A DNA stretch of 63,179 nt, counting the filler, from Bigelowiella natans CCMP2755 (lineage: Eukaryota > Protista > Cercozoa): assembly GCA_000320545.1 (NCBI GenBank). It is 7 parts of 7 records of this genome, joined end to end, with 100 filler letters (N's around TTAATTAATTAA, not from the genome) between each part and the next. Parts side by side here need not be neighbours in the genome. Positions count along the whole stretch, not along the records: positions 44,166 to 51,020 come from ADNK01003224.1; 6 more parts are not named here. One strand, 5' to 3'. The notes under the pieces are model-generated. The model was not told the DNA's origin. It made no database searches and saw only the letters and a program-made list of their open reading frames with translations. Position numbers and translations under genes: made by a program. How positions within the stretch are numbered: position 1 is the first letter of the stretch; every line of letters begins with the position of its first letter. Below, in pieces: positions 44,297 to 51,020 of this stretch.

Positions 44297-44944
44297 CATG
44301 CTGAAACGATAGTACGACATTTGTTCAGGTGCCGTAAATCCTCTTGATTGTGATTTTGGCTGGGGCAAGCTTGGAAATGAAACAAACAACTATAATGTAG
44401 GTGTTTCCTTCTTCCAACTCTCTTAGCCTGTTATGTTTCTTTGGGATTGAAGGGCCTATATAAACGCTCTCTCTCTCTCTCTCCCAGCATCTCCTTTCAA
44501 AATACATATCTGCCAGTGTGTTTTTATACAAGCAAATATTTGGACAAATGGAAATGTCGTTGGTCCTTCATTTATCTGTGCTCCTATTTTCTTCAATAAT
44601 ATGCATTTTAGCACTCACGCTACTCACATCCGCATGCAGCACGAAGACCCTTACGTTGTGTCTTGATAGTCTGATAGTGCGAATAAATTCTAAAGTATCA
44701 TATGCGAATAAATTTGAAAATTTAGTGTCGATATGAGGAAATAGCCTGCAGTTGTACATGGTCACCTACGGTATCTCCAAGTGTAACGTCGGTTCGATTG
44801 GTGAGGCAAACAACTAATTCTTTTCATCGTAAAACGATAGGCAGACTCATATGCATTAAAAATCAATATTGGTACTCCCACGAGCGTGCAAAGGGGGGGG
44901 AGGGGATGGGGTGGGGACATAATCCCTTCTTGGCATGAGTATAG

Positions 44945-45171
44945 ACACAAATAAGGTGGCTGGCGGGCCAGGAGATGGCATCAGCAGCGGCCGAGTAGAA
45001 GTCTTTTACGACGGACAGTGGGGCACTGTGTGTGATGACGGGTTGGTCGCCCCAAGAAATGACAATATAAACACATTACAACTGTAAAATTGTTCGATAT
45101 ATAATGATAAAGGGATGTGATTGAGAGTCAGCATGAACTTTTAAAAGATAGGTGTTATGTGGAAGAGAGAC

Positions 45172-45218
<47 letters not shown>

Positions 45219-46589
45219 GACAGAGAGGGAGGAAGAAAAGAAAACGGCAAAAATCAGCAGTACGTATGACTCAGAGTGAGAGATCGAATAGTGCTCTACT
45301 TTGTTTACTGTAATACTTCATCACCAATTTACAATTGTAAAAATCAAAACATCAGGTTTGAGTGGCGTGAGGCAACAATCATATGCGACACTCTCGGTGA
45401 CTACCTGCCCTGCCTGTATCCCCCCCCTCCCCCCCCGTCCGTCTCTCGCTTTCTTTCTCTGTTACGTACACACACGCGCGCGCGCGCGCACACACACACA
45501 TACACACAGCACTGACCTCTGCCTCCATCTATCACTCAGGCTACCCGAACTCTGGTGTGGCTCACGGCGGTGCCTACTATGGGCAAGGAGATGCTTCTCA
45601 GCCGATTCTGCTCGACGATGCAAACTGTAATGTTACGAGGGATACCCACCTACTGCTCTGCGATGGAAAATGGGGACAGTACTCAGGCAATTGCGGTCAT
45701 CACGAAGATGCAGGCGTTGATTGTCTCCGAACTCCAGCGCCGGTCACGATGGCACCGAATACGGATGCCCCAACTATCACGTGCACCCCTACACGTGTAC
45801 CAACGGAAACGAGAGCACCTTCCTCCTCTCCGACGATAACACCAACGAGCGCGTCACCGTCACGAGCGCCGAGCCTTCCAGGCGCCACGCTGAATCCCTC
45901 TGAGCAACCTTCATCTGGAGCACCTACGACGTCACCGTCCACCATGCCTACCACGCTCTCGCCGACAGATGCGCCCTCATCTCAAGCGCCATCAACGATG
46001 CAACCAACTTTCCAGCCTACCACGATCGTACCTACCACATCGCCTGCGACAAACGCTCCTACCACATCCCCTTCCACCGTCGGCCCATCTACGCATGCAC
46101 CTACCCGAAACCCTGTCTTCACTCATTTTCCAACCGAATCTCCTCAAACCATAGCGCCATTGACCGTGGGGCCGTCTGTGTCACCCGCTACGGCTGCCCC
46201 GACGACTTTGATCCCAACGGCATGCCCGTCTGTTTCACCAACATCAGACTCTCCAACGCACTCGCCGACTTCGAATGTTCCAACCACTTGCACACCGACT
46301 ACGTCGCCAGAAACAACTTTGCCCACAGCGTCACCGACGACGGTTGGACCGACAGCGTCACCAACGGAGACAGAATTGGTTGTTGCGGGAGGGGCGGGGC
46401 CAGCTCCTACGGTAGTTTGTATTATCTTCGGACATTTACAATACATCAATTATTTTCTCTCCATGATCGCATTTCCTTCTTGCTTTATCCATAAAACGCA
46501 ATCATTTATCAGCTGGTTGTAGAAGCGGCGCAGTATTGGAATGTGGAATGCATCGCTCTATCTTCTCTCTCACTATTAATATAAATAAA

Positions 46590-46663
<74 letters not shown>

Positions 46664-47123
46664 ATTTGAAGCTAAAGTGTTTTCATTCTATTCTGACTAC
46701 TTTCAGTTAATCATCGGTGCCATAGTTGGGGTCATAGTGCTGCTCTGCTGTTGCTGTGTAAGTGGCTTCCAATTTTTCACATCATCTTCAACATCTATCT
46801 GCTGCATCCACACATAATAAATAATAAACATACTGACACTTCAATGTACAGATTCATCAGAACTGACGATGTCACATCTATCCACGCCAATTAAGATATC
46901 ATTTGAATATTTTTGGTGCCAACGTTCCTCTAGGCGTTCTTCTTCTGTCGGCGTAGAAGATCAGCAAAGCAGGAGAAAGCAATCAACAAATTGAAGGGAA
47001 GTCAACTCCAAATTGCAGAGGGCATCATCATCGATGTGAGTCATATCATAAATAAACAAATAGATAGGAGAGAGGAAAAGAGAGGGGGGGGGTAGGGGGG
47101 GTAGAGAGAGAAGGGAGAGAGAT

Positions 47124-47191
<68 letters not shown>

Positions 47192-47213
47192 ATAGAAATA
47201 ATATACACAATAT

Positions 47214-47289
<76 letters not shown>

Positions 47290-47474
47290 TGTACTTGATG
47301 CAGACGTCCGACACGAAGATAGGAGGCATCATGAACATGGGGGGTAGTAGTTTGAACAACACTGGTACCTCGCAACAATACATGGGTGGTGCTTCCATAG
47401 AACAGCTGGAGTTGGCAGACGTGCGGATCGGCATGTCCACTGATGATACTGGCCAATCAGCGCAACGTATTTAG
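44945..47474 (+). CDS. SRCR (scavenger receptor cysteine-rich) domain + Pro/Thr mucin stalk + single TM receptor
   Basis: SGRVEVFYDGQWGTVCDDG|FEWREATIICDTLG|...YYGQGDASQPILLDDANC...NCGHHEDAGVDC; PT repeats 45730-46370; TM LIIGAIVGVIVLLCCC. Confidence 0.85.
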
Positions 47475-48687
47475 TTGGAAACATGCAAACATAATCAAGT
47501 CAACAACAAAAGGAATGGGCGTTGCGTTCTTCTTGCCCAGTGTGGTGATCACGATATTTATTTCAATGCTACTTTAAGGCGATTCTTGCTGAAAACACTC
47601 CTACTGGCCTGATTCTTTTACGGGAGCAAATAATGCACATTTGTCGTTACAAAGACGGTTTTTTTCACGACATGCATGGTGAATGACTTGTCATCTACGA
47701 ACGTCGGCGCAAACGTGCGTTTCGCGTTCTGTGGGCAGCAGCTGGAGAGCTCAAAACGCTTGGAGATGTTTGTGTTTCCCTTCTTCCTAGATTTATTCTG
47801 GCAGTTTGTCCTTGCTCTTTATCTTGCGAAAAATGTATACTATGTGACAGTTGTGAATTTCCCCAGTGAAATGAGGCATGCGTCATCCGACGATTTGCGG
47901 CGATGACAACTCTCCCTCCTAGCTAAACATGTCATTCATCTCATTGTAGCGTCGCCAGCGGTAATACTGAGAAAGCAACACGAAAATCATATCCCTGCTG
48001 CTAGCAGTAAGGCTGGCTAGCTGGGCAGAACACGTAGACACAATTCTTGCGCGCAATGACGGCGTATCATGGTCATCTTTTTCTCAGCGCCTTGCGTGTT
48101 GCTGATTTTCATACTAGATATTGTTGGAATGCGCTGCATGATATATACTGGAAGTCGAGAGGAGCTAGGTGCACGTGACGCCGATGCAAACAAGCTACTC
48201 GACGCCACGTACACAGAAGCGCCGCCTTGTTGCATGCTCAGCCACATACACATGTTACACATGCAATGCAATCTGTGAAGACAAATCGTAGCCTATAGCA
48301 GTCACATTATGCAAAGAAATGTGTGCTACCAAGGCAACACACACATTGCTCACAGCCACATCTCTTGCATAGTTGTAGCGCTACGCATGTAGCATCTACG
48401 TGTATGCGTATGTGTGTTGTGTGTGCATGGGACGGCTATGTATGGACGGTAGACGCAGCTAAACATTTGCTTTAATTTTTTTTCAATGTTGATCTCGCCT
48501 TGTGAATGCTAGCTTGCAAATGACACATTATGTTCATGTAGCCACGTATTTGAAATCGTACTGTTAGACTGGCCCGTTTTCCAGTATTCGTGCATGCTAG
48601 CATACTAGCATATTTATACATGTTTGATGCCACAATGGACACACGCATGCATGACACATCTAATGCACACAACATTTGTGAACATAT

Positions 48688-48775
48688 GCTGTGTCTATGG
48701 TTGCTCTGCATCCATAGCTACATTGGGATGATCATTGAAAAGATTTGATCATATCATCCCATCGATCCGTCTCAT
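48688..48775 (+). mobile_element. Degenerate LINE 3'-end copy
   Basis: catagctacattgggatgatcattgaaaagatttgatc...atccgtctcat is similar to the reverse complement of 2755-2830. Confidence 0.65.
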
Positions 48776-48851
48776 TTGTACGATGCGGTGGCGGCCATGT
48801 GCATGGCAACTTGGCAGTTGTGCATGCATGTGTGCGAGTCAGGTTCTGTTG

Positions 48852-48891
<40 letters not shown>

Positions 48892-48907
48892 TATACATAT
48901 ATACATC

Positions 48908-48984
48908 AGCGCTGTAGCCGCTGCATTGCACAGCTACATCAGGATGACCATTGAAAAAATTTAATTTGTTCATTACATCCGTCT

Positions 48985-48990
<6 letters not shown>
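48908..48990 (+). mobile_element. LINE 3'-end copy flanked by (CA)n/(TA)n microsatellites
   Basis: agcgctgtagccgctgcattgcacagctacatcaggatgaccattgaaaaaatttaa...cattacatccgtctcacat; encodes SAVAAALHSYIRMTIEKI*, like the ORF2 end. Confidence 0.9.
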
Positions 48991-49022
<32 letters not shown>

Positions 49023-49274: not shown

Positions 49275-50085
49275 CTATCTTCTCTGTTTCTTTTTCTTCT
49301 TCTTTGGCCCCCCTCGATTCTTCTTCTTGGAGTGTCCAGAAGATGCAGTGGAACTACTGTTAGCAGTAGTTTGAGAAGAACCTGCTGCAAACTCATCCTC
49401 AAGCTTTCTTTTCCGACCTCCTCCTCCTCCCTCCCCTCCTCCCTTGCCCATAGCTTTCAACGCCTTTTCGCGGCGCAGAGCAGCTAGTTCCTCCCGCCCC
49501 TCGGCATCCTATCATAATGATGGGGAATGGATCAGACGGCGACGACGATGATGATGATGATGATGATGATAATGATGCTATCACCCATGGGAGGAGGAAG
49601 AGGAGAAGGAGATTAATTTCCATTGGATATTAGCTCCGTGCAGCATTGTAACATGCATTGGAAAAGTGATTTAAAGGCTCATACGGCTTTGATCTCTCCG
49701 AGAAGCACGCAAGTTATTATATGATTATATTGCATTGTGTGTTATACTCGTGGGTCGTCACCTCGCTCTTGCTTTCAGTTGCTGACTTCATTATATTAAC
49801 GAATTCGTCTAAGTCGGCGACATTATCAATGGCACTTCGTTCCTGCTCCTTCTTCTGTGTTACAAACAAATTATTGCTAAAATAAGACAAGTGCTGGTGA
49901 TACAATGATCATTGATAGTTTTCTCTCCTTCTCTTCCTCCTCGTCATCATCATCATAATCATCAACACTATCATCATACCTTTCGCGCAGCTTTTTCCTT
50001 CCTTTTCTCTTGCAAACGCACAAAGTTGTCCTCCTCAAATTTCTCCCTATACACACACAAACACACACACACACACACACATACA

Positions 50086-50121
<36 letters not shown>

Positions 50122-50238
50122 GGAACTTGAGGTGGTGTAATGTTTGCAGTATCTCCTTTAATAGTCCTCCTAACTCCTGCTGCTACTGCTACTGCTACTG
50201 CTGCTACCACCACACTGAGATGTAGTAGCAGCCAGTAA

Positions 50239-50275
<37 letters not shown>

Positions 50276-50431
50276 GCATATGTAACTACTACTACTACTA
50301 CTACCTCTGAACCAATTTAGCATCTATTTCGTCGTTGCCACCGCCACCGATATCAACCTCTTCGGGCGCAGTTGATAGCATTTCCTTCATCGTCTGTTTA
50401 TTTGTTATCATTTATTTGTAACAGTTGTCTA

Positions 50432-50472
<41 letters not shown>

Positions 50473-50790
50473 TGCTAGTATCGCTGAGTGTTGCTTGCTC
50501 GGCGTAATGATGATGATATTCCACCACTTCTCTTTCTTCTACTACTACTACTACTACAACTGTCTGTGTTAACTCCGCCTACTCACTATCAGCATTGTAT
50601 ATGATGATGCTGATGAGGGAAGCAAGTGGTGGTAGTGGTGGAAGTTAATGCTTGATGATGATGATGATGAAGATAATGATGATGATGATGGCACCTTGAT
50701 CACAGCATTTGAGGCTGCTTTCTCCCTCATCTTACGAGCACGCTTGGCCTTTTTCTTGTCTTTTTTGTCCTCTGTTGCCATTTCCATGGG
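49275..50790 (-). CDS. Neuroguidin/Lcp5-like (Sas10/Utp3/C1D family) C-terminal exons
   Basis: KAASNAVIK|TMKEMLSTAPEEVD...EKFEEDNFVRLQEKRKEK, plus a basic C-terminus. 5' part lost at the gap. Confidence 0.55.
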
Positions 50791-51020
50791 GTTGACCTTT
50801 GTAACAGCAACAATAATGTAAGCATTGAACGATAATAAAATAACAACAGGGAGTAGTACTGAGAGACTGATCGTCCGCTCTGTCTCCCCCCCCCCCCCCA
50901 ACCGACTAAAAGTGCTTCTGTTTCTGCTACAGCCATCTTTGCCGACTGCATGATCCAATCATGCACACACAAGTTGTATCACGGCTTTTAATCAATTTCT
51001 GATTTTTATCAAAAGGTCTA

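Follow-up and report, generated by a model that had tools for sequence, protein, structure and literature searches.

Within a window of 63,179 nucleotides of Bigelowiella natans CCMP2755 DNA (assembly GCA_000320545.1; seven parts joined end to end), the part taken from ADNK01003224.1 (44166-51020) contains a short repeat copy, copy B, which is a dead, extremely 5'-truncated insertion (~80 nt) of a long interspersed nuclear element (LINE), flanked by two convergent genes and embedded in a TA/CA microsatellite. An earlier note on this window had described four sites at which copy B differs from a TA-retaining copy, all of them at TpA, and had concluded that the mutations arose independently in each copy, most simply after insertion. 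The explanation that we regard as probable, if well short of established, is that the C at 48931 and the C at 48940 were inherited by copy B from its lineage, and that the subfamilies of this LINE have been shaped by TpA-specific A:T→G:C hypermutation. The process and its direction are already known for B. natans, and this LINE family would be a new target; what is added here is the action on a LINE family, a gradient among its subfamilies, a filter imposed by selection and symmetry between the two strands.

The family was identified through an exact-pattern scan of public metagenome contigs, which gave three loci, including a full element (L002). In L002, a 483-aa open reading frame (ORF1) overlaps the start of a 1158-aa ORF2, which ends ...SAVAAALHSYIRMTIETI and contains the domains Exo_endo_phos_2 (PF14529, 1e-17) and RVT_1 (PF00078, 2.4e-16). 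Because ORF2 of L002 carries both domains and its C-terminus continues into the 79-nt terminal unit seen in copy B, the repeat is assigned by sequence to the non-long-terminal-repeat (non-LTR) retrotransposons of the apurinic/apyrimidinic endonuclease (APE) type. The same layout, with ORF1 upstream of an ORF2 in which the endonuclease precedes the reverse transcriptase (RT), was found in L007 to L009. In addition to this coding arrangement, the family has the 5'-truncated copies with a common 3' end at different sites that are expected of APE-type LINEs: copies B and A and the copies in L001 and L003 are fragments of ~75-90 nt, and the copies of subfamily S2 share a common element with different 3' flanks. 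A word search with the C-terminal third of ORF2 returned seven proteins, five of which are EukProt jgi/Bigna1 models (B. natans), and one protein cluster holds six further B. natans models together with MMETSP transcripts. One member of the S2-like P0004 cluster is labelled Prorocentrum lima in EukProt, with at least 90% identity to B. natans models, and looks like cross-contamination of a transcriptome rather than a shared element. As regards the LINE clade, an Atlas search confirmed only APE and RT relatives.

Fifteen further contigs were gathered as encoding relatives, the subfamily contigs coming from marine metagenomes. They were divided into S1 (L004, L007-L010, L012 and L014, with 5' parts contributed by L011 and L013), S2 (L005, L006 and L015-L018) and S3 (L002), the remainder being short fragments. 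Along the element's final 1.2 kb, the DNA of S1, S2 and S3 is ~65-75% identical, and the 79-nt terminal unit is nearly invariant across them (alignment A3). In A3, copy B was compared with 13 other copies from public contigs instead of with the reference copy of the earlier note (2755-2836), which is located outside the analysed part of the window. Site frequencies were obtained from a pile-up on 48907-48989 of two raw-read chromatin immunoprecipitation (ChIP) runs (38-nt reads) and two Logan contig sets of the same organism, with 80% likeness and a 2% listing threshold (~1,130-1,170 contig pieces and 3,600-6,100 reads); majority states were used only for counting and are not a consensus or ancestral sequence.

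Copy B comprises the final 18 codons of ORF2 (SAVAAALHSYIRMTIEKI), the stop codon and a 22-nt untranslated region (UTR) ending GTCTCA, and its homology possibly starts slightly upstream, at ~48897-48907. Within the element, the S2 copies hardly differ (three variable columns over ~1,150 nt), whereas their flanks are wholly different right after ...GTCTCA; each is therefore a recent insertion of its own, and 48986 marks the end of the element. After this position, 103 contigs of run X1 read TATAT and 45 match through 48988. Copy A, an older fragment of the same 3' end, lies 216 nt upstream of copy B on the same strand, has the stop codon TGA at 48746-48 and is closest to S1 (~82%); the degenerate pattern used to find it gave no chance matches. 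Two hairpins were predicted in the RNA of the 3' unit, with no covarying pair and a z-score of -1.1.

The letters given in the earlier note for the four sites of copy B are correct (CA at 48931 and 48940, G after T at 48946 and CA at 48987), and the divergent patch that it had set aside after the stop codon is real, 48965-68 being hypervariable across the family. Its description of the differences as TpA-type is upheld as a pattern, in that 4/4 differences between copy B and L003 outside the patch (48923, 48931, 48940 and 48987) are TA in L003 and CA/TG in copy B; it fails at the individual sites 48946 and 48987. Sites 48931 and 48940 are synonymous third positions of codons, and the high-frequency variants of the unit (48925, 48931, 48940 and 48958) all occupy third codon positions in the ORF2 frame. 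At 48931, C is found in ~85% of family reads and T in 15%, and 48932 has no listed variant, so that TG amounts to less than 2%. At 48940, the reads are divided among C (~40%), T (40%), G (13%) and A (7.5%), with G in 4.8% at 48941; the C is shared with S2 and L001, whereas S1, S3, L003 and copy A have T. The C at 48931 and the C at 48940 co-occur in S2 and L001.

The third site, 48946, is the last base of a Met codon that is conserved in L002, in copies A and B and in all six related proteins that reach the C-terminus. No other letter reaches 2% in ~4,000 reads, and G is present in more than 98%. Because G occurs in all copies, Met in the related proteins and no variant in the reads, the A in the reference copy of the earlier note is a derived, private state that arose by TG→TA. 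The fourth site, 48987, is the first base after the conserved ...GTCTCA and reads C, T, T, C and C among the near-identical S2 copies; it is tail or target and not part of the conserved element.

These observations bear directly on the proposal that every copy, copy B included, gained its CA/TG states independently after insertion from a TA-retaining ancestor. Several features of the family are in its favour. At 48940-41, CA in copy B is matched by TG in copy A (48724-25) and by TA in S1, S3 and L003, and 3/5 of the TpA sites downstream of 48931, judged as TpA by TA-retaining copies such as L003, are converted in copy A. Both CA and TG variants are present at low frequency (2-9%) at 48962/63, where the G at 48963 accounts for 8.6% of family reads, and at 48974/75. 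Furthermore, several pairs among the sites 48923, 48931, 48940 and 48963 display all four haplotypes, which implies either recurrent hits at TpA or recombination between elements. However, independent hits on two strands after insertion are not expected at 48931-32, where the mirror outcome TG is nearly absent, and the linked C/C is diagnostic of S2 and L001, so that the data already indicate a shared source. The two positions are also synonymous, the conversions being filtered by selection, while 48946 is reversed and 48987 lies outside the element. An independent post-insertion origin of all of these states is thus decidedly unlikely, and for the four changes in copy B it is not sustained: two appear to be inherited, linked, synonymous subfamily states, one runs in the opposite direction and one belongs to the tail or target. 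The sharing of CA/TG by subfamilies, which the earlier note had named as evidence that would count against it, was observed; TA, which in that case should be the derived state, probably is not, except at 48946. The pairwise comparison of copies had found the right process; without family-wide site frequencies, however, inherited states are not separable from mutations after insertion.

As for how the source lineages came to differ, the terminal unit itself points to TpA. Outside the patch, all differences between copy B and S2 are TA versus CA/TG, although it is copy B that retains TA (48963 and 48974); the same type accounts for 3/4 of the differences from S3 and 3/5 of those from S1 (2/5 in the case of L007). 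Among 14 copies, six columns outside the patch vary by transition, and five of these are of the TA/CA/TG kind, whereas positions of this type make up ~34% of the stretch (22/65; binomial P ~0.02). In the pile-up, transitions at 2% or more were found at 6/8 TpA positions versus 6/30 other A/T positions outside the patch (P=0.007), and at 0/8 G/C positions outside YpR steps. Decay of CpG was considered as a source of CA/TG and rejected: CpG is not depleted (rho 0.8-1.0), one of the two testable CpG positions varies, at ~2%, and the third state at variable sites is TA, not CG.

The subfamilies differ in the same manner along ORF2. From S1 through S3 to S2, the GC content rises from 36% to 44% and 46%, rho for TpA falls from 0.79 to 0.57 and 0.30, and rho for CpA+TpG rises from 1.07 to 1.27-1.33 and 1.47. 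In the last 1.2 kb, 82 TpA of S1 were followed into S2, where 19 persist and the others include 27 CA and 19 TG; three changes run in the reverse direction. In S3, 47 TpA of S1 are converted against three in reverse; between S2 and S3 the exchange is symmetric. Transitions from S1 to S2 affect 53/164 TpA positions versus 75/579 other A/T positions (odds ratio 3.2, P=7e-8) and those from S1 to S3 also favour TpA (odds ratio 2.2, P=2e-4), with no excess in the reverse direction.

A process of this kind has been observed experimentally. In a mutation-accumulation study of B. natans with 15 lines plus T0, 231/302 nuclear mutations were located inside two integrated viral regions, all but one of the mutations in these regions were A→G or T→C, and every such transition fell on TpA (Mettrop et al., 2026; bioRxiv 10.64898/2026.01.13.699255). 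The mutated viral DNA was single-copy and transcriptionally silent, and coding sequences (CDS) depleted in TpA were enriched for endonuclease-RT and RT Pfam families (Mettrop et al., 2026). An ADAT2-like deaminase was proposed as the enzyme, adenine deamination being proposed and not proven, and no analysis of LINE copies was reported (Mettrop et al., 2026). Measured against the 5% cut-offs of that preprint (no more than 0.43 for rho TpA; no less than 1.52 for rho CpA+TpG), S2 passes the first and just misses the second.

For this LINE family, we infer the polarity, as well as the involvement of such an enzyme. TA is likely to be the starting state, since 31 sites are converted in both S2 and S3 and, although 22 of them have the same outcome, nine have TA in S1 but opposite states in the other two subfamilies, one showing CA where its counterpart shows TG, which is hard to explain otherwise. 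The reverse polarity would make CA/TG ancestral and derive the TA-rich copies (S1, L003 and the reference copy) from C→T changes at CpA/TpG resembling repeat-induced point mutation (RIP). It can draw on the TG→TA change that the reference copy did undergo at 48946, on CA being the majority state at 48931, on a comparison of three subfamilies that is unrooted and on the standard B. natans mutation spectrum, which is biased from GC to AT (Mettrop et al., 2026). Beside the nine discordant sites, however, a further one is found just upstream of the terminal unit, in the ninth ORF2 codon before the equivalent of 48908 (~27-29 nt; read in L002, L007 and L015). S1 has TAT (Tyr) there, S2 TGC (Cys) and S3 CAC (His), and gene model P0005 has Phe. 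A single transition leads from Tyr to Cys on one strand and from Tyr to His on the other, the same logic that the earlier note had applied to a CAT/TGT codon. The S1 ORFs are intact and free of in-frame stop codons, whereas CpA→TpA would be expected to create them; the only context-specific mutator documented in B. natans runs from TpA to CpA/TpG, and RIP is known only from fungi (PMC2621366). Reverse polarity is therefore very improbable.

The changes have passed through selection on ORF2. Differences between S1 and S2 are distributed 71/47/179 over the three codon positions, and variable columns within S1 are distributed 55/42/160 (P=6e-22). At TpA, the changes show a strong preference for synonymous positions (P=4e-7). 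This bias towards third positions and synonymous changes implies that the conversions were fixed in lineages under ORF2 selection and not only in dead copies. The excess at TpA nevertheless persists within each class: 56% of TpA versus 25% of non-TpA are converted at synonymous positions (P=1e-5), and 17% versus 5% at nonsynonymous positions (P=5e-4).

The strand distribution of the changes bears on a further possibility, in which the sense RNA of the LINE was edited from A to I by an ADAR-like enzyme and the edits were fixed through reverse transcription. ADARs have a preference for UpA (Mettrop et al., 2026), the conversions are fixed in transposing lineages and S2-like transcripts are present in MMETSP. 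Such editing predicts A→G only on the sense strand, yet T→C and A→G are about equal on that strand, both from S1 to S2 (27 and 19) and from S1 to S3 (25 and 22), and are randomly interleaved. The published mutations also lay in single-copy, transcriptionally silent DNA, and sense-RNA editing is accordingly an extremely improbable source. Such symmetry is more in keeping with a process on DNA, or on both strands, than with sense-RNA editing. No strand-coordinated clusters of conversion were detected by a runs test.

The hypermutation that we favour would thus act repeatedly on both DNA strands of the LINE lineages at TpA, changing A:T to G:C. Conversions tolerated by ORF2, mostly synonymous, would become fixed in lineages that are still transposing, and the outcome would be the gradient from the TA-rich S1 through S3 to the TA-poor S2. 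Copy B would then have taken the C at 48931 and the C at 48940 from an already converted source element, G at 48946 would be the original state, and 48987 would belong to the tail or target.

A number of points weigh against this hypermutation. The polarity is unrooted, with three approximately equidistant subfamilies, so that a process from CpA/TpG to TpA in S1 would leave identical tables; direction is argued from the discordant sites together with the published experiment. That experiment measured hypermutation only in two viral regions, and high-depth repeats (>2x) were outside its callable genome (Mettrop et al., 2026). The pile-up test involves only eight TpA positions and 38-nt reads mapped to copy B itself, and the metagenomic subfamily contigs may stem from more than one Bigelowiella lineage. 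No TpA signal was found within S1: singleton transitions affect 6/3270 TpA versus 19/10415 other A/T positions, and polymorphic TA/CA/TG columns number 50/1168 versus 113/2280, while the direction of the minor alleles is 22 versus 20. The changes are also not exclusive to TpA, the excess being two- to fourfold, and transversions and G/C→A/T changes are common between subfamilies and in the pile-up; a strict criterion of A→G and T→C alone fails, as expected if editing overlies long ordinary divergence. Finally, many non-TpA changes separate the subfamilies, including the general shift from A/T to G/C, and compositional amelioration could therefore contribute.

Several of these points lend weight to the absence of any special mutator, with the pattern produced by ordinary LINE subfamily divergence, transition bias, codon-usage drift and selection against TpA in coding RNA. 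The third-position excess indicates that selection shaped the differences, the shift towards G/C extends to non-TpA sites, the signal is absent within S1, and the TpA frequency of S3 (0.041-0.043) equals the mean of host CDS (0.041; Mettrop et al., 2026). On the other side, the TpA excess remains within the synonymous and the nonsynonymous classes taken separately, rho for TpA in S2 falls below the 5% cut-off for genome windows, the signature is also found at UTR and noncoding positions of the pile-up, and a TpA-only mutator has been observed experimentally in B. natans. Divergence without a mutator is on balance unlikely, although it retains some weight.

A broader interpretation, which we put forward tentatively as a possibility only, is that the mutator hits LINE DNA as well, that lineages survive by purging tolerated TpA, that the gradient reflects an arms race, and that (TA)n arrays are possibly converted too. 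A TpA mutator that is unable to create stop codons would not readily kill LINEs, and the TA-poor S2 would continue to amplify, yielding near-identical copies. Compound arrays of the kind (TA)n(TG)n or (CA)n(TA)n, and CA/TG-rich alternating tracts like 48170-48850, may have arisen from (TA)n through the same editing. So far, foreign DNA has been shown to undergo TpA-specific, GC-enriching hypermutation in only one species and two viral insertions; if LINEs are targets too, the process would amount to a genome defence or mutational force of general reach, with an effect on much of this genome, its footprints could be dated on subfamily trees, and escape by loss of TpA becomes a question that can be asked. 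In L003 (1650-6162), an integrase-like ORF of 599 aa, by reading of its sequence possibly from an LTR retroelement, lies beside a LINE tail, with rho of 0.26 for TpA and 1.62 for CpA+TpG. This signature fits the idea that other retroelements are also targets.

The coordinates of the features are collected in Table 1.

Table 1. Features of the terminal LINE copies and their surroundings (positions along the window).
Feature	Position	Strand	Evidence or remarks
Copy B, 5'-truncated 3' end of APE+RT non-LTR retrotransposon	48908..48986	+	blastn/tblastn to L002; alignment A3; pile-up
Site 1: C, third position of His codon (CAC/CAT)	48931	+	C in S2, S3, L001; T in S1, L003, copy A
Site 2: CA, 48940 being third position of Ile codon (ATC/ATT)	48940..48941	+	Subfamily-tracking
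Site 3: G of invariant Met codon (ATG, 48944-46)	48946	+	G in 15/15 aligned copies
ORF2 stop codon TAA	48962..48964	+	TGA in S2, S3 and copy A: a TA/TG column
Hypervariable patch directly after stop	48965..48968	+	Alternative letters 6-46% in pile-up; indels in A3
Tail or target CA(TA)16	48987..49019	+	Outside conserved element; 48987 is first base
Copy A, older, more decayed 3'-end fragment of same family	48703..48776	+	Repeat family D13; alignment; degenerate pattern
Alternating purine/pyrimidine flank with CA/TG excess	48170..48850	.	Alternation 0.659 vs 0.50 expected, z=8.1
SRCR gene (PF00530 split by intron), mucin-like single-pass membrane	~44940-47474	+	Predicted splice sites
Multi-exon gene, Lys/Glu/Asp-rich low-complexity protein pieces	~49275-50800	-	Weak SR-25-like match, E 0.005, below cut-off

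Fragments of LINE tails occur in clusters, at 48703-48986 of the window, at 57-142 and 366-448 of L001, at 2618-2689 of L010 and at 1680-1712 of L014. Tandem pairs are represented by copies A and B and by head-to-tail joints (48986→48908) in four to five contigs, and inverted pairs also occur, directly abutting the 3' end of another copy. From this clustering, the element seems either to favour a particular target, possibly (TA)n, or to have inserted more than once at one site. Four short copies, with starts at 48903, 48706, L001 ~3480 (a reverse-complemented coordinate that corresponds to forward 366-448) and L003 ~1532, begin within ~25 nt of one point, 75-90 nt from the 3' end of the 5-kb element. 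From this shared start, either truncation is extreme and non-random or a 79-nt unit is mobilized alone. A short target-site duplication at copy B, possibly CAT, is indistinguishable from the surrounding TA/CA microsatellite.

The CA/TG-rich tract upstream of copy A was considered as a degraded body of the element and rejected, as neither DNA nor protein comparison revealed any likeness to L002 outside the ~80-nt ends. Over its ~680 nt (48170-48850), rho is 1.84 for CpA+TpG, 1.69 for GpC, 1.34 for ApT and 0.80 for TpA, and one possible origin of the tract is an old foreign insert, another a (TA)n-type array that has decayed or undergone editing at TpA. Compound microsatellites are found at 46594-46665, 47127-47287, 48855-48906 and 50049-50118, in which (TA)n passes into (TG)n twice, (CA)n(GA)n occurs twice and (CA)n is followed by TA repeats.

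Of the words sampled from the sequence, 0.97-0.98 recur in 20 sequencing runs of one organism (~100-175 M letters of contigs), which include 16 samples from 2025, each belonging to a different study; this number fits the 15 lines plus T0 of the B. natans mutation-accumulation study (Mettrop et al., 2026). The analysed part as a whole is very rich in microsatellites, and copy B lies in the spacer where the 3' ends of two genes face each other, an SRCR-domain gene (+ strand) and a low-complexity acidic/basic one (- strand). The SRCR gene includes a long mucin-like exon rich in Pro, Thr and Ser (45540-46420) and encodes a transmembrane segment (~46706-46760) as well as a short cytoplasmic tail; microsatellites crowd its introns. 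No B. natans gene model for it was retrieved by a word search with the SRCR exon. Trinucleotide repeats (CAT, CTA and GAT) occur in and around the - strand gene. A Pfam scan of small ORFs around copies A and B gave nothing meaningful.

Four kinds of known system can be set beside this family. In stringent-type LINEs, a conserved 3' end is recognized by the RT and subfamilies succeed one another with diagnostic positions. The present family resembles such a succession in its deep subfamilies with a nearly invariant 3' unit, in the severe 5' truncation of most copies and in the diagnostic sites passed down from source elements; it differs in that the tail is (TA)n or absent instead of poly(A) and that the conserved unit overlaps the last 18 codons of ORF2. 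The footprints of deaminases (G→A by APOBEC3 and A→G by ADAR) are likewise context-specific transitions in retroelement copies that are read as host defence. However, APOBEC edits C in minus-strand complementary DNA (cDNA), leaving strand-asymmetric G→A, and ADAR edits RNA, whereas here both strands are about equally affected and the changes are unclustered.

Fungal RIP also leaves dinucleotide-specific transitions that mark repeats or foreign DNA and are visible as TA versus CA/TG columns (PMC2621366). It proceeds from CpA to TpA, creates stop codons, enriches AT and is tied to the fungal sexual cycle, in contrast to the present changes from TpA to CpA/TpG, which enrich GC in a rhizarian alga and, to judge from the genetic code, should be unable to create a stop codon. 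Membership in RIP was rejected, as the TA-poor subfamilies are GC-richer, nine sites are discordant, the frames of TA-rich copies are open and the measured direction is opposite.

The closest likeness is to the viral hypermutation of B. natans itself, with which the LINE shares the dinucleotide, the two strand outcomes (both CA, 27, and TG, 19, were found at TpA), a foreign or selfish target, the host, in which related ORF2 fragments are represented by jgi/Bigna1 models, and a long-term footprint of TpA depletion with CpA+TpG enrichment. There, the mutations were seen de novo in single-copy viral regions and ~100% fell on TpA; here, copies and subfamilies of a multicopy LINE were compared with one another, and the changes amount to a three- to fourfold excess filtered by ORF2 selection in active lineages.

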